Shown: piece after piece, positions 6,969-55,651 of the stretch
Position numbering within the stretch: the stretch's first letter is position 1
Layout of the letters: each line of letters starts with the position of its first letter
IMG/VR virus record: IMGVR_UViG_3300009703_004110
Coordinates: 248,001-312,000 of that record
Length of the DNA stretch: 64,000 bases
Strand: one strand, 5' to 3'
The notes under the pieces: model-generated
The model's input: the letters and a program-made list of their open reading frames with translations, nothing else
Databases searched by the model: none
What the model was told of the DNA's origin: nothing
Translations under genes and position numbers: made by a program

Positions 6969-7871
6969 TTAGAACCTCATATTCATATAATAGCTTGTGA
7001 GATCAAGCACAACATCCTTGGCTAACTTAGCAAGGCTAAAGCGAAGCTTGTCTCCAAACTGACGCGGCGGTGTATACTTAATATGTAAAACTTCGCGCTG
7101 CGAAATTGCGTGCATAATGTAATCTTCACTGGTAAGGACATGATCAACTAGTCCCTTGTCCTTGGCATCTATTCCATGCCAATACTCTCCAGTAGCAACT
7201 TCGTCCATATATAGATTCTGACGGAATCTCTTTACGTGATTCTTAAACAAAGTATGCACACGTTCCAGATCACCTTCAAACTTTTCTTCTGCTTCCTTGG
7301 TAATTGGACCAAGAGGACCAACAGTTCTCTTGTACTTACCAGCAGTATACTGCTGATAGTTAACGCCAAGTCGCCCAAGTAAGTCATTAAAGTTCATAAA
7401 CTCAGACACTACACCAATGGATCCAATAATAGCGTATGGTGCCGAGATAATCTTGTCACCAATACATGCCATCATATATCCACCAGAAGCGGCCACCTTG
7501 TCAACCGCTACAGTCAGCGGAATTCCACGGTCCTTTAGCCTCTGTAATTGCGATGCTGCGTATCCATATGCGTGCGCGGCTCCGCCCGGACTTTCAATCC
7601 TGACCAATACTTCGTCCGTAGTTGGATCGGCATTAGAAAGAACGGCGGTAATCTCTTCTGACAGTGCTGTGGCTTGTGTCGCCATAACATCACCGTTGAA
7701 GTCGATAACAAAAAGTCTTCCAGCGCCGCGATGGACTAGTCGTTTGATTGACTTTAAGTCTATACCTGAGCCGGAGCCTTTCGAAAGAATAGCTCCATAA
7801 GCAGCGAATCGGTTATTCATGTTCGTCACCTGAATCGGTGATCGAGTCTTACTAAATAAGAAGTCAAGCAT
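6969..7871 (-). CDS. sohB: S49-family peptidase (SohB-like)
   Basis: ESPGG, DKVAASGGYMMAC, GSIGV, AGKYK. Confidence 0.9.
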   Translation of the reverse strand: MLDFLFSKTRSPIQVTNMNNRFAAYGAILSKGSGSGIDLKSIKRLVHRGAGRLFVIDFNGDVMATQATALSEEITAVLSNADPTTDEVLVRIESPGGAAHAYGYAASQLQRLKDRGIPLTVAVDKVAASGGYMMACIGDKIISAPYAIIGSIGVVSEFMNFNDLLGRLGVNYQQYTAGKYKRTVGPLGPITKEAEEKFEGDLERVHTLFKNHVKRFRQNLYMDEVATGEYWHGIDAKDKGLVDHVLTSEDYIMHAISQREVLHIKYTPPRQFGDKLRFSLAKLAKDVVLDLTSYYMNMRF

Positions 7872-7954
7872 GTAGTTTGCCCTTGTTACAGTCTAGAGTG
7901 AAGTATATCCATCTGATAGAATAAATATACCGGAGTCTTCAAAAATTTCAACCC

Positions 7955-8656
7955 CTATGGGGCATTTTTCTGAAAATAGTTTAGTGTCGGCTGAGCTACG
8001 ACAGGTTGCCGAGTCCAATGTTGTGTGGTCTGAACGTGATTCTTGCGAACCCATTTACCAACCCCAACCATTTTACGCCCTTCCTTCTCAAGCCTAATGT
8101 CCTTTAGCTCAGCCGTATGTCTGACCACCAGCCCCTCTCGGGTAGGGCCATAAATAGAAGACAGCCCCGAAAGCCCTGTTACAACTTTTTCGAAAATATC
8201 TTTGCCAGGAAAGGCACCTCGCAGTATAACAGGTACAGTGGGTAGTCTTAAAGCTGATGAAGAAAAGTCTTCTACATCATCCCAAGACCACCAAAAGTCC
8301 AGATCATCATCCCTTACTCCGAAAATCATTAGGTGGGATGGTAATATCGAATACTCAATTGAATGGACTGCGTAGACCCACTCACCAAACACAGAGAGAC
8401 CACTCGGAATGGAGTTTTTCAAACGTGAATGTAATGGCTTTAAGGTGTTAAACGATTTATGCGCTGGAGCACCTGCGTGCGAACGCGCGTATACATCCGT
8501 GCGCGTCAGACACACGTTAGAGCCGTCCATCTTTTCTGTTAATACAACTTCCTCACCCAATAGTACATCTAGATCATCTGCGGTCATAAGGCGATCGTCA
8601 GATGTTGTACCTGGGGAGAACGGAAGGTGCATTGTTCTTGGATATTTTGCAGACAT
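7955..8656 (-). CDS. ATP-dependent RNA ligase family protein
   Basis: KYPRT.HLP.SPG, EKMDGSN, GEW, EGLVVR, KWVR. Confidence 0.85.
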   Translation of the reverse strand: MSAKYPRTMHLPFSPGTTSDDRLMTADDLDVLLGEEVVLTEKMDGSNVCLTRTDVYARSHAGAPAHKSFNTLKPLHSRLKNSIPSGLSVFGEWVYAVHSIEYSILPSHLMIFGVRDDDLDFWWSWDDVEDFSSSALRLPTVPVILRGAFPGKDIFEKVVTGLSGLSSIYGPTREGLVVRHTAELKDIRLEKEGRKMVGVGKWVRKNHVQTTQHWTRQPVVAQPTLNYFQKNAP

Positions 8657-30553: not shown

Positions 30554-31435
30554 CGCTTTCTCCCTTTGTATTTTCTGTCAAAGCTTGCTAATTTTTGCAA
30601 GTCAATATTGGCAGGAGAATTCCTCATCTTCCCGCCATCAATAAATAAGTCTAATGCCTGATCTCTAGTGATAATAGCCGTAGACTTATCATCTTTGCGC
30701 GGGCCCCATCCTAAGCGTAGAAGGAAGTTTAGCATAGCACCTGGATCGACTCCAGAGTCCATGTAACTAATCATAGATGCAGCACCGTCCCGTTTTACTT
30801 AACTTCTTCTTATCTTTAAACAGAAGGCCGGTATGGGCGTATTGCGGGACTTTAATTCCTGACATTGGAATAGTGCTCAAAAAATAATAAAGCACAATCT
30901 GCTTACCAGTATTCTTCTGGTGGTCAACACCGCGAATAACATAATTTACACCAATATCAAAGTCGATATCGTCACAGACATTGGCAAAGTTATATGTTGG
31001 CGATCCATTAGACTTAATTAAAACCATATTTGAAATATAATCAAAGTCTGATTGTCCAATCTTAATATCTCCAGCAATATTATCATGCCATGATTTGCAA
31101 GGAAAGTTGTCCCAATCCTGGAAATCTAAAACTACTGCTCCATCGTCTAATCGCTTTGCGAAACCGCCATCAATCAGACACTCTGCTACGTGCTGATAAA
31201 GATCGAATCGGTTACTCTGATAAACGAGCATATCATAGTCAAGACTGAGCCAGTCCATAACTTTTAAAATATCATCAACTTTGCTTTGATCATTTCTTGC
31301 AATATCTGTATCATCAATTCTTAAGATGAATTTTCCGTCTGTAGCCCGAGCTGCCAACCAATTAAAGTAAGCGGTACGAGCCGTCCCCATATGCATATCA
31401 CCCGTGGGGCTCGGTGCTATTCTTGTATTAAACAT
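30550..31435 (-). CDS. gltX: Catalytic-domain-only glutamyl-tRNA synthetase (GluQ-RS-like), split by one extra A at KLSK
   Basis: RIAPSPTG.MHMG, LRIDDTD, IRGVDH; reads KKLSK-RDGAAS if one A is removed. Confidence 0.85.
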
Positions 31436-31655
31436 GCCTACACTCATAATGAAAGTCATCCAAAGTCATAGCCTTATATTCTGTGAACTCCGAATCTTTA
31501 TTTAATTTATGTGCAGCCAATACAGCGGTATCTTCTTTAAAGGAAGGACCAGCAGTAATGCTCCATAAACCAGGGTCATTACTATAAGGATTGCGAGACC
31601 AGCTTGCTACAACCCATAGATCGTAAACGCTTACGTCAGCTTCAGGTATTTCCAT
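31428..31655 (-). CDS. Hypothetical protein
   Basis: ORF with SD. Confidence 0.55.
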   Translation of the reverse strand: MEIPEADVSVYDLWVVASWSRNPYSNDPGLWSITAGPSFKEDTAVLAAHKLNKDSEFTEYKAMTLDDFHYECRHV

Positions 31656-32198: not shown

Positions 32199-33548
32199 CT
32201 AAAGGGTCTTTAGCAGGCTATCAGACTCAGTGGCTTCCGCCACATCATTATCATCAAGCCTTTCAAAATCCGCATCAGGTACTTCTACATATCCCTGACC
32301 GATCATGCTTCTAGAAACTAGATCAATCTCCATTTCTCCGCCGCACCATTCGCAAGCCCTCTCTCCCGAGACATAATGGCTGCCGGTACTTTTCTGGCAG
32401 ACTTCACAGATGGTCGCATAAGCAAGAAGCTGATCATCACCGTTATTATCCATTGGCTCAGGATCAACTAAGGTAAGTTGTGAGCCACTGGACTTTGTAG
32501 TAGTAATTGAAGACTTAGACCACTTCTCTCTATTCTCCTTATTGATTTCTGTTTCAATCTGGCGAAGACTCTTTCCATCTCCATCCTTAATCAACCAGAA
32601 GTCTGGAGTACTAGAGCCAGGATATTCCCTATACTTAGGTAGCACTAACGGCTTATTGTAAGTAATAAGCTCTTGTCGATCCATCTTAATAGACATATGC
32701 CAGCCATCGGCACTCATCTTGGATCTTGGACCAAAGTAGTTTGAGCCGCCATTGTGACCAACTGAGGTCATACCAAACTGACGCATAGTAACGGCGCCCT
32801 TTAGAGGCTCATCAGCGCACTCAAATCTCCACATTGAAAACATTTTTTCACGCATTTCATCGCGCTTGCTTTCATCAGGAAACATCTTCTCCAGAGCTTC
32901 TTCGTTAGTAGTAGATCCGTCCACTAAGAAAAATGGGTTGCAGCCCAGAGAGGCAATAAACGGATGATAATCTTCAAAGCGCCTTGTGTTTCTTGGAACT
33001 AGAATCCTGCTAATTCCGAGTCCATAAGGTTCGATTAATTGATGTAATACAGTAAATGTATACTGCTGTTGCAATCCATCTTTGGTGCACATATCATTTA
33101 ACTTATACCACTCTCGGTCGTCTCTGTCCAGCTTCATTCCAAGCCAATGCTGCATATAATCATTGGTTGCATTATACGCACAACAGGCAACAGTTCTGTT
33201 CTTAGTAATTCTATGTGGAATGTCATTAATATCCATAGCGATGGCAGGAATATACCCTTTTCCGTGAGCATATTTCCATACCTCATCCTTCGGAGATAAC
33301 GTAACTTTCCAGTGGTCAAAATTACCACGTTCAAAAATCTCACCCATTTTATATTCGCTGAGAATCTTTATCTCTTCGAAATCGGGATCAGTTCTGTCCG
33401 TCATAACAATAGCGGCATATCCAGTCTTCTTTGGCGGGACATACTTCTTTGGCCTCGGTGTGTTACGAGAGGTGTTGCCATAATAGCCACCATACCCTCC
33501 ATATCCTCCGCCTGAGCTACCTTGTGATCTACCGTTATTCATCTTCAC
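32199..33548 (-). CDS. Hypothetical protein, possible papain-like Cys peptidase plus Zn ribbon
   Basis: VACCAYNA...VGH; CEVC/CEWC; Gly/Tyr-rich N-terminus. Confidence 0.5.
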   Translation of the reverse strand: MKMNNGRSQGSSGGGYGGYGGYYGNTSRNTPRPKKYVPPKKTGYAAIVMTDRTDPDFEEIKILSEYKMGEIFERGNFDHWKVTLSPKDEVWKYAHGKGYIPAIAMDINDIPHRITKNRTVACCAYNATNDYMQHWLGMKLDRDDREWYKLNDMCTKDGLQQQYTFTVLHQLIEPYGLGISRILVPRNTRRFEDYHPFIASLGCNPFFLVDGSTTNEEALEKMFPDESKRDEMREKMFSMWRFECADEPLKGAVTMRQFGMTSVGHNGGSNYFGPRSKMSADGWHMSIKMDRQELITYNKPLVLPKYREYPGSSTPDFWLIKDGDGKSLRQIETEINKENREKWSKSSITTTKSSGSQLTLVDPEPMDNNGDDQLLAYATICEVCQKSTGSHYVSGERACEWCGGEMEIDLVSRSMIGQGYVEVPDADFERLDDNDVAEATESDSLLKTL

Positions 33549-34266
33549 TCCCTACATGAACAGGAAAGAAATCATCATGGAGGAACATATCATCCATTTG
33601 CAACTGGCAACCATTAATGTCTATATTCCAACATGTCATAGTTCCTTCGTCCTCTGCGCCTTCAAGAATATTCCAAGGATCAAGTCCGAAAAAGAATCCA
33701 GCAGCCTTTGCAATACCCTGGACCAGCATAACTCCCGCAGTACGGTACTTATACATTTCACACGGAGGCTCTTTAATATCCTGCTCCTTCAAGGTACGTC
33801 CACCAACAACATCCGGTCGGAATGGAAAGGTATCAAAGTTGGGAGAGGCCCAATTGATAATTCCCTGTCCTTGCCTTGAGATACCTGTATGCATACAAGG
33901 TCCAGAAACTCCAGCTAATGCGAAGCCCCAAAGTAACTGACGAGTAGGAATGTTATCTACACAGTCAATAATCAGATCAGCGTCACTAAGCAGTTGCTTT
34001 GCATTAAAGGCCGTTAGCTTTTCAGTAACTGCCTCAGAAGTAATGCCAGGGTATGAACTGGCATAACGGGCACAAGTCTCAGCCTTCATAATTCCATCTT
34101 CTGCTTCAACGCCATCTACGTTTTGATTGGCCGCGTTTCTTCCTTCCCAGGTATCAAAATCAACGAACCTAAAGTTAGCTGATACGTCCTGAGAATAAAG
34201 AAGCTTCGGAATTTCATCAGCAACATGACTTCCAATGAAGCCACAACCAATTACTACAATATTCAT
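33535..34266 (-). CDS. ThiF/E1-like adenylyltransferase
   Basis: IGCGFIGS, VDFD...RN..NQ, KAE, DLIIDCVDN..TR, candidate catalytic Cys in EPPCE. Confidence 0.9.
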   Translation of the reverse strand: MNIVVIGCGFIGSHVADEIPKLLYSQDVSANFRFVDFDTWEGRNAANQNVDGVEAEDGIMKAETCARYASSYPGITSEAVTEKLTAFNAKQLLSDADLIIDCVDNIPTRQLLWGFALAGVSGPCMHTGISRQGQGIINWASPNFDTFPFRPDVVGGRTLKEQDIKEPPCEMYKYRTAGVMLVQGIAKAAGFFFGLDPWNILEGAEDEGTMTCWNIDINGCQLQMDDMFLHDDFFPVHVGSEDE

Positions 34267-34286: not shown

Positions 34287-35867
34287 TTATCGGCCCTGCA
34301 TGGCGCGCATCTTATTCAGAACTGCTGCCTTGCGGTCCTTCTTCTTTGACTTATTACCAAAGAATACAATTGGAGCTTCGGTGATCTGTAGATTGCATCG
34401 CTCTGCAAATGGTCCGGCAAGCCAATCCTCTAGTAACCAGTCGCCATTCTTCTGGTCGACTCTTCCTGTAGCCTTGGTCCACTTTGAAACTCTCTGACAC
34501 CAAGCGGACTGCTGCATACGCATATTACCATCCTCATCTTCGAACACTACAACGTATCCTCGCTGAGAACCTCTTACTCCAACAATGTTAGAGCCGTGAT
34601 ATGAAATAGCAATATTGAAATGAGTCCCCATCTTTCCGACACCGTAGGAATTCTTGTCCTTAACCCAGTCATGAATCTGGGCAGAGTCCTTAAATCTAAT
34701 TCCTACAGCCTCTGTGATCTTAAATCCAGGGAATCCTCGTGCAGCAAGATAGTCGTTAATCTTGCGCTTGAATACAGGACCAGCCTCTTTGGACAGAAGC
34801 TCTCTTGTGTGCGCATTATACGCCTTCTTGTTTTCTACAAGGCGTGCCTGCATTAGAGTGTGTGCTTCTTCGGCTAATTGATCAGAGCGTACAAAGGCCC
34901 CTGTCTCAATATCATAAGCGAGAATATGAAGAACGGCCTCGTAGGATCCAGTGTGATTATCTTTCATAAATGACGGCCTACCAACAGCAAACATCGAATG
35001 ACTATGAGACTCCAAATGGATAAATAGATTTACAGCCAATTGGTCCGAACCCTTGATTGCAGGTAGCACAAACTTAGTTGCACTTACAAGCTTTCGGTTA
35101 GCACCAAGATAATAAATATAATTCTTCTGACTACCCCAATCGCCAGAAGTGACGCTGTACGCTTGAACGATAACTGGAATATATCGATTGTGCAAAACAG
35201 TATACTTAGCGTACTTATCATCTGCCTTCTCAGGTGCAGCCTCAAGAACTTTCCTGCCCTTCTTTACAGCCCTCTTTGGTAGCTCAATAAAGTCAAAGTT
35301 CTTAATTTCTTTCTGGATAGCCTTAAAGGCCGCAGACTTCTTGATTTCGGCTTCTGTCTCAACACCGTAAGGCATTACCTTCTTAAACTCAGACTGCATA
35401 ATTGTAGCAAGTTCCGAATTATCAGTTGTCACATGAGCATTCTCTTGATCGATCTTAGGGCAGCTAAGAAGCTTGGGCAATCTGTCCATATAGATGCCTT
35501 TGCCGATAAACTTCTGACCGGTTCCTCGCATATACTTATAGATTCTTACCAAAGAGAACTTGCCAGCTTCAGGAAAGAATACGTATCTAAAGTTCTTTGC
35601 AGACTTCTTAATCATACTTGGAAGCTCATAAATACCGGGCTCATCAACTACGATACTCATACCCTCTCTAGAGGCGTCGCCAGGAAGACTTCCAAATGCC
35701 GCCGTGATTGGTGCGGGCATATAATAATAGCTATACCCACCTACATCAACATGCTGATAAGCATGAGCGTAGTGATTTGAATATCCATATCGATTCCTAC
35801 GTCGACGAACCGAATTAATATCTTCAAGTGAGGTTTGTAAAGACGCAATTACTTCTACCGTGTGCAT
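34287..35867 (-). CDS. Large hypothetical protein ending Gly-Arg
   Basis: 526-aa ORF; HSH motif. Confidence 0.75.
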   Translation of the reverse strand: MHTVEVIASLQTSLEDINSVRRRRNRYGYSNHYAHAYQHVDVGGYSYYYMPAPITAAFGSLPGDASREGMSIVVDEPGIYELPSMIKKSAKNFRYVFFPEAGKFSLVRIYKYMRGTGQKFIGKGIYMDRLPKLLSCPKIDQENAHVTTDNSELATIMQSEFKKVMPYGVETEAEIKKSAAFKAIQKEIKNFDFIELPKRAVKKGRKVLEAAPEKADDKYAKYTVLHNRYIPVIVQAYSVTSGDWGSQKNYIYYLGANRKLVSATKFVLPAIKGSDQLAVNLFIHLESHSHSMFAVGRPSFMKDNHTGSYEAVLHILAYDIETGAFVRSDQLAEEAHTLMQARLVENKKAYNAHTRELLSKEAGPVFKRKINDYLAARGFPGFKITEAVGIRFKDSAQIHDWVKDKNSYGVGKMGTHFNIAISYHGSNIVGVRGSQRGYVVVFEDEDGNMRMQQSAWCQRVSKWTKATGRVDQKNGDWLLEDWLAGPFAERCNLQITEAPIVFFGNKSKKKDRKAAVLNKMRAMQGR

Positions 35868-35909
35868 TATATACTCTCCTAAGTCTTAATTTAGTATCAT
35901 GCAAACATG

Positions 35910-35943
35910 AAACAGCGCAGGCTAACTAAAGTCTGCGCTGTTT
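35910..35943. terminator. Stem-loop downstream of the Ubl-like gene
   Basis: AAACAGCGCAG / CTGCGCTGTTT. Confidence 0.5.
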
Positions 35944-35978
35944 AAACAAAGTCCTGCTAAGTCGTTCTAAGGATCGGT

Positions 35979-36434
35979 TTATCGGCCCCAGGTACCCACG
36001 GCAGTAACGCGCCAGAAACGCTCGTCACCAACTTCCATAGGACCAGCGATGTTGATCGCATCCTGAGAGATAACGTAACCGTCACCCTGATCGGTGGTGT
36101 TGTAGACGTGACCCTTCGGGCGAGTATCTAGAACCCAACGAACAACAGACTCAGCTAGAGCTTCCGCAGGAGGAACCTGACCAGAGGCCAGATATTCAGC
36201 GGTAGCATCAGCGAAAGCACCCTGCATTCTTAGTGCAGCCTCCGGATCGCTTTCCAGCAACTTAGTAAAAGCAGCGGTATCAAACTCCGGTGCCGCAACC
36301 TTAACGCCACCTTTGACACCAAGATCCGCAACGGAAACCTGCTCATTAAGCTCCACGGTGGAGAGAGAATCCCTGCCGCGAAGTGTCAAACGAATAAGAA
36401 CCTTATCGGTATCAAGTACATGTAATTCAGCCAT
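35979..36434 (-). CDS. Putative ubiquitin-like (beta-grasp) protein with an insertion, C-terminus GTWG-R
   Basis: N-terminal IRLTL...VELNEQVSVADL; C-terminal PMEVGD...VTAVGTWGR; near the E1. Confidence 0.5.
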   Translation of the reverse strand: MAELHVLDTDKVLIRLTLRGRDSLSTVELNEQVSVADLGVKGGVKVAAPEFDTAAFTKLLESDPEAALRMQGAFADATAEYLASGQVPPAEALAESVVRWVLDTRPKGHVYNTTDQGDGYVISQDAINIAGPMEVGDERFWRVTAVGTWGR

Positions 36435-36466
36435 TTATTCTATCTCCTGATTGTTAATTAGACCGC

Positions 36467-36925
36467 TTATCGGCCCTTGTTTCGTCTCATTCTACGAGAC
36501 TCAAACTCTCTAAGTTTGCGCTCATATCGCGCCTCAAACATACTATTCCATGCCGCAGAAATCCTACTAAGAAATCCAACCGGCTCTGTCATATCAACGT
36601 CAAGATTTTCGGAACGTTCCATCCATCTATCAATTAATTTCTGGTCTGATGCCGACACCTCCTCTTCTACCGTATCAGGTAGACTTTCCGAAGCTGTCAT
36701 CCATCTTTCAATATCTGCCATATCAGACTGAGAAAGACCGGCCATTGGGTCCGTCTTAAGTCCTTCGTAATAAGCAAGAGTGTGCTCAGAACCATCGCCT
36801 AAAGCATCAGCTCTACTATTCAGTTCCTCACTGTACGAACCACTTGAGTTGGTTACGAACCTGTCGTATCTACTATATACGCTGTCCATAAGCCCGCGAA
36901 AACTGCCGCGTCCTTCCTCTTTCAT
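36467..36925 (-). CDS. Hypothetical protein ending Gly-Arg
   Basis: SD GAGG; internal DIERWM/LIDRWM repeat. Confidence 0.7.
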   Translation of the reverse strand: MKEEGRGSFRGLMDSVYSRYDRFVTNSSGSYSEELNSRADALGDGSEHTLAYYEGLKTDPMAGLSQSDMADIERWMTASESLPDTVEEEVSASDQKLIDRWMERSENLDVDMTEPVGFLSRISAAWNSMFEARYERKLREFESRRMRRNKGR

Positions 36926-37019: not shown

Positions 37020-37439
37020 CTATACTCTGTCGATGGTAACTGGTACATTACTTTTCTTGGCGATATTGATCGTCATATATGTTCCAGAGTACCTTGTCTT
37101 TCCGGTCCAAAAAGCGTGCATCTTATCTACTGATGAAACTATAAGTTCATTTCTAACCCTATAGTCATTCTTACCCTCAGAGCCTTTTGGGGCGTTTATT
37201 CTAACATCGCTGTTCTTGATTGATTCCCAATCAACAGCCTTCCTATTGTATGGTACAACTGCAATAACATACAGTCCGCTCTCTTTAGCTTTCTTGGCGA
37301 CCAAAGCATCGGCGCCTTCACATGCTCCGTGATATACAATAGCGTTATCCGGCAGAGACCTAATCCATGCCGTAATGGCATCATCTAATAACGGTGTGAC
37401 TGTTCTTGTTCCGGTCATACCAAACTTAGGCCGTATCAT
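37020..37439 (-). CDS. SLOG-superfamily (DprA/YspA-like) protein
   Basis: GMTGTR, HGACEGAD, YRVRNELIV, SGTYMTI. Confidence 0.8.
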   Translation of the reverse strand: MIRPKFGMTGTRTVTPLLDDAITAWIRSLPDNAIVYHGACEGADALVAKKAKESGLYVIAVVPYNRKAVDWESIKNSDVRINAPKGSEGKNDYRVRNELIVSSVDKMHAFWTGKTRYSGTYMTINIAKKSNVPVTIDRV

Positions 37440-37897: not shown

Positions 37898-38284
37898 TTA
37901 TACGAAGAGATCTAAATTAAACAGAAAAGTTTCTTTATCTTTTTCATCAATAATTTGCTCAAGAATATCCTGAGCATCTAATGATCCTTCCCTTAGCCCG
38001 CAGTCCTGCTCAACTATTACGTGATACCACCGAATTCGTCCACCTTCTCGAACCTCTATCCAAATAGAGGGATCGCTTTTAAGCTCAATAGAGAACTTTG
38101 TCAGATGCATATAGAACTCATATACAAGATCGTTTTCTGACATTAATTCATAATCAAGTTCTGTTTTCACTTTACTAGTGGAAACTCTGATACTTTTCGG
38201 ATTGAATAAGCCGGTATCAAAATACCGGCTTATCTTTTTAATCTTGCCACAGGCACTATGAAACTTGGCGTCCCATAGCATCAT
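37898..38284 (-). CDS. Hypothetical protein, C-terminal-tag family
   Basis: Ends KETFLFNLDLFV. Confidence 0.65.
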   Translation of the reverse strand: MMLWDAKFHSACGKIKKISRYFDTGLFNPKSIRVSTSKVKTELDYELMSENDLVYEFYMHLTKFSIELKSDPSIWIEVREGGRIRWYHVIVEQDCGLREGSLDAQDILEQIIDEKDKETFLFNLDLFV

Positions 38285-38790
38285 CGAGGGACGAAAGTTA
38301 ATGTCATAAAGCGTCCGCTCATTCTTGGCGGCTGGTCTACAACGGCAACGTCTTCCACTAACGCGATAAGATCATTGCATCTTTCACGTCCAATATCAAT
38401 GTGACGCATATCCGCACCCTTAAACTTCATAGCAACCTTAACTTGGTTTCCTTTGCTAATGAAGTTCTTAATTTGGTTAGCTCGGACGTTTAAGTCTCCG
38501 TCAGCTATCCTCGGACTCATGCGAACTTCTTTCATCTTAACCCTTGTTGAAGATGCCTTTGTTGCCTTTTGCTTCTTCTTTCGGTCATAGACGTGCTTGC
38601 CCCAATCCATAAGCTTGCACACCGGGACTTGTGCATCTGATACTCTTACCAAATCTAAGCTTCTATCTGCTGCTAATTTAATAGCATCATCACGTAGAAA
38701 CTCTCCCATCTTTTTTCCGTGCTCATCAATTACGAGCACCCTTCTTGCTTTAATGTTGTAATTGATTTGCTGAACATTTTTCTTGATCAA
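38281..38790 (-). CDS. infC: Translation initiation factor IF-3
   Basis: LDLVRVS...PVCKLMDWGK, KEVRMSP.I...D; probable TTG start after GGAG. Confidence 0.92.
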   Translation of the reverse strand: MIKKNVQQINYNIKARRVLVIDEHGKKMGEFLRDDAIKLAADRSLDLVRVSDAQVPVCKLMDWGKHVYDRKKKQKATKASSTRVKMKEVRMSPRIADGDLNVRANQIKNFISKGNQVKVAMKFKGADMRHIDIGRERCNDLIALVEDVAVVDQPPRMSGRFMTLTFVPR

Positions 38791-39275
38791 ACTGGATTCT
38801 CCCTGAGAATTGTTGAAATTGTTATGGCATACTGAGTGCCATCTTTCATTGGATACATACAATACTTTGGGCCCATTGAATATCCATTTGTACACTGTTG
38901 AACAATGATATCTCCCGGCCTAATTTCTTCTACCGTCTCATCAAATTTATATTGACAAGATTCGAAGTTTCCCATAACTAATGTTACGGACTCTCCGACA
39001 GTATTTCTTGAATCAATATGTGGTATTACATAGTCTCCAACCTCAAGCTTCCTGATTGTTACAGTATTAAAATTCTGCTCTATTTCTAAGATATCAATTA
39101 TAGCTGTGACAGCTTTGAAAACAAGTGGGTTAATATCTTCGTTGTCTTCATTATATCTAATAGCAGTATGTCTACCTTCCCAGCTTACACCAGTATATGT
39201 CAGGTCTTCTATTTTGGATATAACGTAATTTTGCTGTCTTGTGTTTAATTTGCTTCTTATAATTCTGTGCTTCAT
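38787..39275 (-). CDS. 2OG-Fe(II) oxygenase-like (DSBH) protein
   Basis: GDYVIPHID; second His not evident. Confidence 0.5.
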   Translation of the reverse strand: MKHRIIRSKLNTRQQNYVISKIEDLTYTGVSWEGRHTAIRYNEDNEDINPLVFKAVTAIIDILEIEQNFNTVTIRKLEVGDYVIPHIDSRNTVGESVTLVMGNFESCQYKFDETVEEIRPGDIIVQQCTNGYSMGPKYCMYPMKDGTQYAITISTILRENPV

Positions 39276-55575: not shown

Positions 55576-55651
55576 TGGCACGCTGTAAGGGATTCGAACC
55601 CTTGACGCGGAGGTCTAGAATCTCCCGCTCTGACCGCTGAGCTAACAGCGC
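55576..55651 (-). tRNA. Amber suppressor tRNA (anticodon CTA)
   Basis: 76-nt cloverleaf; GGAGA-TTCTAGA-CCTCC (A31/C39 mismatch), G73, CCA. Confidence 0.8.

Follow-up and report, generated by a model that had tools for sequence, protein, structure and literature searches.

Three consecutive, unrelated minus-strand genes of a 332-kb phage (IMG/VR record IMGVR_UViG_3300009703_004110) end in the same ten bases, and the middle gene belongs to a rare family of candidate ubiquitin-like proteins, whose invariant last glycine is predicted to enter the neighbouring E1 enzyme. This points to an undescribed phage-encoded protein-tagging system. The window analysed is a stretch of 64,000 nucleotides (positions 248,001 to 312,000 of the record). 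The 10-mer GGGCCGATAA is found at window positions 34287–34296, 35979–35988 and 36467–36476, always on the minus strand, and these are the only three copies in the whole 332,270-bp genome (iid expectation 0.34 for both strands). Each copy is the in-frame end of an ORF and comprises the last base of a Gln, Trp or Lys codon, respectively, followed by Gly-Arg-stop: gC (34287–35867, 526 aa, ..MQGR), gB (35979–36434, 151 aa, ..TWGR) and gA (36467–36925, 152 aa, ..NKGR). The three proteins are unrelated by BLASTP, and the next gene downstream encodes a ThiF-family E1 (Pfam PF00899, E 9e-14).

The shared gene end that the preliminary description reported is therefore confirmed. Its statement that no other gene ends this way holds for the 10-mer but not for the dipeptide: among 394 crude ORFs six end in GR, and the other three use GGT or GGA followed by AGG. 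GGGCCGATAA is the only 10-nt gene end shared by three genes. However, as a bare cluster of a 10-mer occurring three times within 2.5 kb, it is one of 29 per strand, against about 5 in Markov-simulated genomes. The significance thus comes from the in-frame position at gene ends and the adjacency of the genes, not from clustering alone. The probability that both neighbours of gB end in GR is about 6e-5, and that both also use the codons of gB about 2.5e-4, and chance was rejected as the explanation. TAA, TGA and TAG are all used as stops, and no other genetic code was invoked.

gB has only 24 hits (one of them a spurious 614-aa protein) among 1.84 billion representative proteins. In its family (30 sequences seen, 28 aligned) the only invariant features are the start Met, one Pro and the near-terminal Gly (G150). 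W149 is kept in > 90% of the 28 homologs, and the family ends in [W/F]-Gly. The Gly is also present in two further sequences (loci L019 and L020; 30 of 30). It is encoded by GGC, GGA or GGT and is followed by 0–7 variable residues: nothing, R, E, S, F, Q, H, V, D, Y, VCL, LHQ, AGV, KVG or ITFGANI. The conserved signal is thus the Gly, not Gly-Arg and not the nucleotides. Indeed, L007, another related locus, spells the same TWGR end as GGC CGC, and the relatives L016, L017, L004 and L019 read TGG GGC TGA, so that the extra Arg in the window is explained by a TGA-to-CGA change.

The structural model of gB (pLDDT 89) has a β-β/three-helix insert/β-β core and a flexible tail, ..VGTWG-R. In an exhaustive structural (VIA) search the hits that span the whole model are almost all ubiquitin-like or β-grasp domains, but at weak Z of only 4–4.8, and Foldseek searches against PDB and AlphaFold clusters gave no significant hit. 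A prediction of the complex of E1 with gB(1–150) scored 0.78 against a best control of 0.00, a mark that was reached by 58 of 80 solved complexes and 2 of 110 mismatched pairs. In the predicted complex gB residues 144–150 contact E1 residues 7, 9–12, 102–107 and 109–111, which places the tail in the adenylation site. This score may only reflect likeness to solved E1–Ubl complexes, and our own alignments were used in the prediction.

The E1-like adenylyltransferase (33535–34266, minus strand, 243 aa) has intact ATP/Mg motifs. G7-x-G9-x-x-G12, D36, R43/N44/N47/Q48, K61 and D104/N105/R109 are invariant in 8 orthologs, as is one cysteine, C169 (PPC), which lies 65 residues after D104; its position in the crossover loop is inferred. 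The protein has no E2 or rhodanese domain and no conserved Zn-binding CxxC pairs. Its best sequence matches in PDB are MoeB and ThiF, and it weakly matches the PADLOC Cap2 ‘E1-E2’ models (E 6e-6).

The gene after the E1, gD (32199–33548, minus strand, 449 aa), is modelled (pLDDT 83) as a probable papain-like cysteine peptidase core (about residues 118–295) with a C-terminal CxxC...CxxC zinc ribbon. C123 is invariant and starts helix 123–136, with a His nearby. All of the 50 best hits in the exhaustive structural search are papain-like peptidases, led by C39 double-glycine peptidases, which cut after glycine, and including deubiquitinases. The matches are weak, however (top Z 5.4), and Foldseek against PDB and AlphaFold clusters gave no significant hit. 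The His, in a GHNGG block, shifts by about three residues in distant members, and the third catalytic residue is not conserved. No JAB domain was found, nor was any E2 match found in Pfam or PADLOC for any cassette protein.

gC is unannotated, with a single invariant Cys (C457 in WCQR) and a basic C-terminal tail. A profile search against PDB sequences gave one marginal hit, to a DUF3992 protein (E 0.011). An Atlas look-alike search gave no usable hit for gC or gD, and the Atlas model of gC is poor (pTM 0.24). From the first seven loci gC also appeared to have a conserved, capped Gly, but six closer homologs ended in S, HNL, NNL or AK. The near-terminal Gly (6 of 13) is at background level (P = 0.14) and is not conserved in the family. 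gA is likewise unannotated and evolves fast; it has a conserved TLAYYE..DP..GLS core and a basic tail ending in ..RRNKGR. A homolog search with gA returned only itself, and its syntenic orthologs end in NNIGQ, AAKAAKR, AAKRNRA and VTTES. None of gA, gB, gC or gD matches Pfam, PHROGs or PADLOC, and family-wide Pfam scans of gB, gC and gD gave no consistent hit.

The order gB–gC–E1–gD is kept in every related contig long enough to show it (L004, L005, L008, L009, L012, L016 and L017). In the window and in relatives the cassette sits among IF3, RF-like, aaRS and tRNA genes. A blastn search of the region against a phage GenBank collection and a single-protein scan of IMG/VR with gB found no match. 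A metagenome scan for a close relative, which might have shown whether the gA and gC ends are stable, returned the same phage (L018, identical) and two distant gB genes. In public reads the source sample shows no variants, while the fragments from a second read set miss all three sites and carry no information on polymorphism or editing.

The preliminary description named the E1 correctly and offered two readings: a C-terminal GR tag giving several substrates for one E1, or a DNA/RNA signal such as a processing or recombination site. That interpretation is partly supported. The tag reading is supported for gB only, and in altered form, since the tag is the Gly and the Arg is one of many disposable caps. 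For gA and gC the condition set beforehand as refuting it is fulfilled, because their orthologs do not end in GR and mostly lack a terminal Gly. Three substrates are thus unproven, although the non-random identity of the ends keeps the idea alive for this one lineage.

The nucleic-acid reading is not supported. The 10-mer is absent from the seven related loci searched for it (the same seven contigs that keep the gene order), and none of the other gene ends examined carries it. The sites have no Rfam match at E up to 1, no shared RNA structure (fold z-scores +0.7, +1.1 and −3.5) and no terminator pattern. A stable stem-loop followed by UUU does lie in the gB–gC spacer (35911–35942, minus strand; z −2.5) and may be a terminator or attenuator after the gB gene, but it was not called by the pattern scan.

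We favour, with moderate confidence, a model where the 10-mers mark the ends of genes in a conserved jumbo-phage cassette of gB (ubiquitin-like protein), gC, a ThiF-type E1 and gD (papain-like cysteine peptidase). In this view gB is made with an optional short cap after its Trp-Gly; in this phage the cap is one Arg, created when the ancestral TGA became CGA and translation ran on to the next TAA. gD would trim the cap and expose the Gly, the E1 would bind gB with the tail in its ATP site and adenylate the Gly carboxylate, and C169 would then take gB as a thioester. From there gB would be passed to a target lysine, and we speculate that C457 of gC could take part. The distribution of the motif, the invariant Gly with its varied codons and caps, the gene order and the conserved E1 residues are established by the sequences. 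The folds of gB and gD and the docking of the gB tail are predictions, whereas trimming, adenylation (from the conserved motifs), thioester formation and conjugation are inferred. In the lineage of the window alone, gA and gC have acquired exactly the same end, most likely by short-patch copying from the end of gB, for example by addition of an in-frame GGCCGA before TAA. The patch was probably kept because a Gly-Arg end can be handled by the same peptidase and E1; this functional step is the least certain.

Other explanations appear less likely. The ends of gA and gC could be neutral accidents of DNA repair or replication, a short templated patch copied from the end of gB 0.5 and 1.7 kb away and tolerated because the tails are unconstrained, with gB the only E1 substrate. 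The identity stops exactly at 10 nt with no flanking similarity, and it includes a synonymous third-position G and the rare codons GGC and CGA, which points to copying rather than selection on residues. The gA and gC tails vary freely among orthologs, and removing the in-frame GGCCGA leaves ends of ortholog-like length. However, two independent patches both landed in frame at the stop codons of the two genes flanking gB, and nowhere else in 332 kb, which is hard to get without selection, and no such patch is seen in any relative. We consider this possible but unlikely. About as doubtful is a sulfur-carrier system, where gB would be a ThiS/MoaD/TtuB/Urm1-like carrier whose terminal Gly is adenylated and converted to a thiocarboxylate, feeding for example tRNA thiolation; the GR ends of gA and gC would then be irrelevant by-products. 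The MoeB and ThiF matches of the E1 and the surrounding translation genes would fit, and capped carriers trimmed by a peptidase exist (QbsE/QbsD). Against this, gB ends in Trp-Gly and not Gly-Gly, the E1 lacks the Zn CxxC pairs and any rhodanese domain, no PP-loop thiolase, thiazole or MPT synthase was recognized, and the predicted peptidase is papain-like, with deubiquitinases among its structural matches, and not JAMM.

A signal tied to translation termination is very unlikely. It could be a rare CGA codon before UAA that stalls ribosomes, or a CGA/UGA switch by mutation or editing that yields Gly-ended proteins. The nucleotide identity goes beyond what the residues need, CGA makes up only 12% of Arg codons here and is one transition away from the TGA of relatives, and there is no phage tRNA-Arg on the coding strand. 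Besides the evidence against a nucleic-acid signal given above, the available assemblies show no variants at the sites. A bolder reading, also unlikely but not excluded, is that jumbo phages carry their own ubiquitin-like tagging system, made of an unusual β-grasp protein ending in Trp-Gly, a minimal E1, a papain-like peptidase and a Cys-bearing partner, which in this lineage has recruited two unrelated neighbouring proteins as extra substrates by transplanting the Gly-Arg-stop end of the modifier onto them as a 6–10 nt patch. One E1 would then serve several unrelated C-termini, and the three gene ends would be an unusually clean natural case of a reactive C-terminal end being copied onto other proteins.

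Ubiquitin-like conjugation in bacteria has recently been found to act as an anti-phage defence (Bil, CBASS Cap2), and a phage-encoded Ubl/E1/peptidase set would be the viral counterpart; we found no description of one in the searchable literature. With four conserved genes the cassette is small enough to be tested directly in E. coli. The Bil, Bub and CBASS type II (Cap2/Cap3) operons likewise encode an E1-type adenylating enzyme next to a protein whose C-terminal Gly is the reactive end, with a peptidase that exposes or removes that end, roles that are inferred for the phage proteins. As in CBASS, a large non-Ubl protein with a flexible tail (gC) sits beside the E1. The present cassette differs in being encoded by a phage and not by a host defence island, in that no UBC-fold E2 domain was recognized, in its predicted papain-like rather than JAB/JAMM peptidase, and in a candidate Ubl with a three-helix insert that ends in Trp-Gly. 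The ThiS–ThiF and MoaD–MoeB sulfur-carrier pairs share the stand-alone ThiF-family E1 of about 245 aa and a small partner activated at a terminal Gly, an activation that is inferred for gB, but here the partner ends in WG instead of GG, there are no Zn-binding CxxC pairs or linked cofactor-synthesis genes, and a predicted cysteine peptidase and gC are conserved partners. The lambda/T1 tail assembly protein I, with protein K (JAB and NlpC/P60 peptidases), is a phage-encoded ubiquitin-like domain with a conserved C-terminal Gly next to a peptidase that includes a papain-like fold (Iyer, Burroughs and Aravind, 2006; PMC1779556); that system has no E1 and lies in a tail-assembly module, whereas here an E1 is the conserved core and the neighbours are translation genes. 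The C39 double-glycine leader peptidases (PCAT1, LahT, ComA) are the best structural matches to the gD core (Z 5.3–5.4) and are papain-like enzymes that cut directly after a Gly, but C39 domains are fused to ABC exporters and remove N-terminal leaders, while gD is soluble, carries a zinc ribbon and would cut 0–7 residues from a C-terminus.

The 10-nt pattern GGGCCGATAA occurs at window positions 34287, 35979 and 36467, in each case on the minus strand, and the 332,270-bp IMG/VR virus record holds only these three copies (expectation 0.34 for both strands under an iid model). Each copy is the in-frame end of an ORF: gA (36467-36925, 152 aa, ending ..NKGR*), gB (35979-36434, 151 aa, ending ..TWGR*) and gC (34287-35867, 526 aa, ending ..MQGR*). 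The three proteins are unrelated by BLASTP. The next gene on the same strand (33535-34266) encodes a ThiF-family E1 (Pfam, E 9e-14) and is followed by gD (32199-33548). The observation in the preliminary description, that three consecutive unrelated genes just upstream of the E1 end in the identical 10-mer, is thus confirmed. In a crude set of 394 ORFs six end in Gly-Arg, the other three using GGT/GGA + AGG, and GGGCCGATAA is the only 10-nt gene end shared by three genes. Bare clustering is not special, since 29 different 10-mers per strand recur three times within 2.5 kb, against about 5 in simulated genomes; what is special is the in-frame position at three adjacent stop codons. Outside the window (which spans bases 248001-312000 of the record), at genome positions 154,500-157,400, several A/T-rich 10-mers (TTTATATGAA, TAGATATGTT, AAATTATATG) recur three or more times within 2.5 kb and three genes end in TTTATATGA, probably reflecting a small family of paralogous genes or repeats.

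A profile of gB searched against 1.84 billion representative proteins returned only 24 hits, one of them a spurious 614-aa protein. Together with loci from IMG/VR and metagenomes (related loci are designated by L numbers), 30 family members were seen and 28 aligned. In the alignment only M1, P49 and G150 are invariant, and W149 is conserved in more than 90% of sequences. Sixteen of the 28 end exactly at this Gly, whereas the others continue with R, E, S, F, Q, H, V, D, VCL, LHQ, AGV, KVG or ITFGANI; L020, a further family member, adds Y. The Gly is encoded by GGC, GGA or GGT, and the one other TWGR end (L007) uses GGC CGC. Whether the residues or the nucleotides are kept in orthologs had been set beforehand as the test between a protein and a nucleic-acid signal, and for gB the outcome is a protein signal, namely the Gly, with the residue after it free to vary. 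The closest syntenic relatives (L016 and L017, and also L004 and L019) read TGG GGC TGA at this point, and L017 has TAG directly after its TGA. The TGG GGC CGA TAA of the window is therefore most simply a T-to-C change in the old stop codon, with translation running on to an adjacent stop.

The gene order IF3 .. SLOG-like – gA – gB – gC – E1 – gD is the same in L016 and L017. The gA orthologs are 39-41% identical, share a TLAYYE..DP..GLS core and end NNIGQ, AAKAAKR, AAKRNRA and VTTES. Homologs of gC end MRAMQS, MQHNL, MQNNL, LQNNL, ANIAK, NAVG, NALG, RQGLV, HIGV, KKGAKIA and IIEDI. A conserved capped Gly in gC was suggested by the first seven loci but was not borne out by closer homologs: six of 13 have a Gly in the last five residues, against a background of 0.289 (P = 0.14). 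The Gly-Arg ends of gA and gC therefore belong to the lineage of the window only. A search for a close relative by which to date them found none, and the only 100% match, L018, is the same phage in another assembly. The 332-kb record is labelled a ‘provirus’ in IMG/VR, yet identical genes lie on contigs of 391 kb and 420 kb in other assemblies of the same or related samples, and the phage genome may therefore be larger than the record. In the distant relative L011, the metallophosphatase gene upstream of gB (1399-1977) also ends ..HHGR* with GGCCGATAA and is followed (1990-2070) by what looks by eye like a tRNA gene, while gB there ends TWGE; this 9-nt likeness is possibly a coincidence.

Although lineage-specific, the ends of gA and gC are not explained by chance. 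Outside the cassette 3 of 391 ORFs end in Gly-Arg, and the probability that both neighbours of gB do so is about 6e-5. Given Gly-Arg-stop, the probability that both also use GGC CGA TAA is about 2.5e-4, because CGA makes up 12% of Arg codons and GGC 24% of Gly codons; in addition, the preceding synonymous position is G in both CAG and AAG. The identity stops sharply at 10 nt, and removal of an in-frame GGCCGA leaves ..MRAMQ* and ..RRNK*, lengths like those of the orthologs. The nucleotides were therefore most probably copied as a short patch from one end to the others rather than arrived at independently. The reading of the 10-mer as a nucleic-acid signal found no support: the region has no Rfam match at E up to 1, the three sites have no common fold (z of +0.7, +1.1 and –3.5, with only the gA site lying in a hairpin) and no terminator pattern is present at the sites, although a separate stem-loop lies about 40 nt after gB. 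The motif is absent from all seven related loci searched for it, no other gene end examined carries it, and the assemblies show no variants. The interpretation in the preliminary description, either a shared C-terminal Gly-Arg tag giving several substrates for one E1 or a DNA/RNA signal, is thus partly supported, in that a C-terminal protein signal is found for gB, but as the Gly alone.

The order gB – gC – E1 – gD is kept in every related contig long enough to show it (L004, L005, L008, L009, L012, L016 and L017). In L009 an HNH/NUMOD3 homing-endonuclease gene (7602-8249, minus strand) is inserted between gC and the E1 on the opposite strand, so that the cassette is a site of homing-associated DNA exchange in at least one relative. 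Directly upstream of gA, a 139-aa SLOG/DprA-like protein is encoded at 37020-37439 on the minus strand (weak Pfam YAcAr/DNA_processg_A; PHROG 289, E 4e-11), and it is also present at this position in L016. The cassette sits in a block of translation genes (window 30767-31459 and 38281-38895; L016, L017 and L008) that is conserved across relatives and comprises IF3, a class-I aaRS fragment (tRNA-synt_1c in relatives), RF-1-like proteins, SerRS, a MetRS-like protein, a tRNA-binding protein and many tRNAs. Of 19 tRNA genes in the window (25 in the genome), one at 55576-55651 on the minus strand has a CUA anticodon (amber suppressor; labelled tRNA-Pyl by ARAGORN). TAG is still used as a stop in about 18% of crude ORFs, including gD, and late-stage TAG recoding, as in some large phages, is a possibility. 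ARAGORN also calls a tRNA-Arg(TCG) on the plus strand at genome 317643-317736, overlapping a tRNA-Gln(TTG) on the minus strand; since all other tRNAs are on the minus strand, the Arg call is probably a mirror artefact.

The E1 retains GxGxxG, D36, R43/N44/N47/Q48, K61, D104/N105/R109 and one Cys (C169 in PPC) in all eight orthologs and has no E2 or rhodanese domain. Its best PDB sequence matches are MoeB and ThiF, and it weakly matches CBASS Cap2 models. The gB protein models well (pLDDT 89) as two strands, a three-helix insert, two strands and a free tail. Foldseek found no match, whereas in an exhaustive VIA structural search the hits that span the whole model are almost all ubiquitin-like or beta-grasp domains (Get5 UBL, Fubi, ISG15, SUMO1, RA domains, talin F0 and streptokinase); their Z is only 4-4.8 and we treat this as a lead. 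Prediction of a complex of the E1 with gB residues 1-150 gave scores of 0.78, 0.77 and 0.81, against 0.00 for the best of three controls. This mark was reached by 58 of 80 solved complexes and 2 of 110 mismatched pairs, counts that hold only roughly here because our own alignments were used. In the predicted complex gB residues 144-150 contact E1 residues 7, 9-12, 102-107 and 109-111, which are the nucleotide loop and the Mg/adenylation motif. The score may reflect memory of solved E1-Ubl complexes; even so, that shows likeness to them, which is the point at issue.

The gD protein models at pLDDT 83, with the invariant C123 at the start of helix 123-136. All 50 best matches to residues 118-295 in the exhaustive structural search are papain-like cysteine peptidases; the top three are C39 double-glycine peptidases (Z 5.3-5.4), and the list includes Josephin, herpesvirus M48 and UfSP. 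Only 98 chains reached a Z of 2 or more, and Foldseek was not significant. In gC there is one invariant Cys (C457, in WCQR) and no recognisable fold was found.

Taken together, the conserved Gly with variable caps, the conserved gene set and the intact E1 motifs are established by sequence comparison, whereas the placement of the gB tail in the E1 site and the papain-like fold of gD rest on prediction. We infer that gD trims the cap, that the E1 adenylates Gly150 and that C169 forms a thioester. We speculate that gB is transferred through C457 of gC to a target, and that gA and gC may serve as extra substrates in this lineage.

The interest of the system lies mainly in the cassette rather than in the 10-mer itself. 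A survey of 224 jumbo phages describes no E1/Ubl system (PMC7824862), and our other literature searches found none. The known phage Ubl, lambda/T1 tail protein I with protein K, has no E1 (PMC1779556). As proposed, the cassette would work like the bacterial Ubl-E1 operons (Bil, Bub and CBASS Cap2/Cap3) and like ThiS-ThiF pairs. It differs from the former in that no UBC-fold E2 and no JAB peptidase were recognised, and from the latter in that it lacks the GG end and the Zn/rhodanese features.
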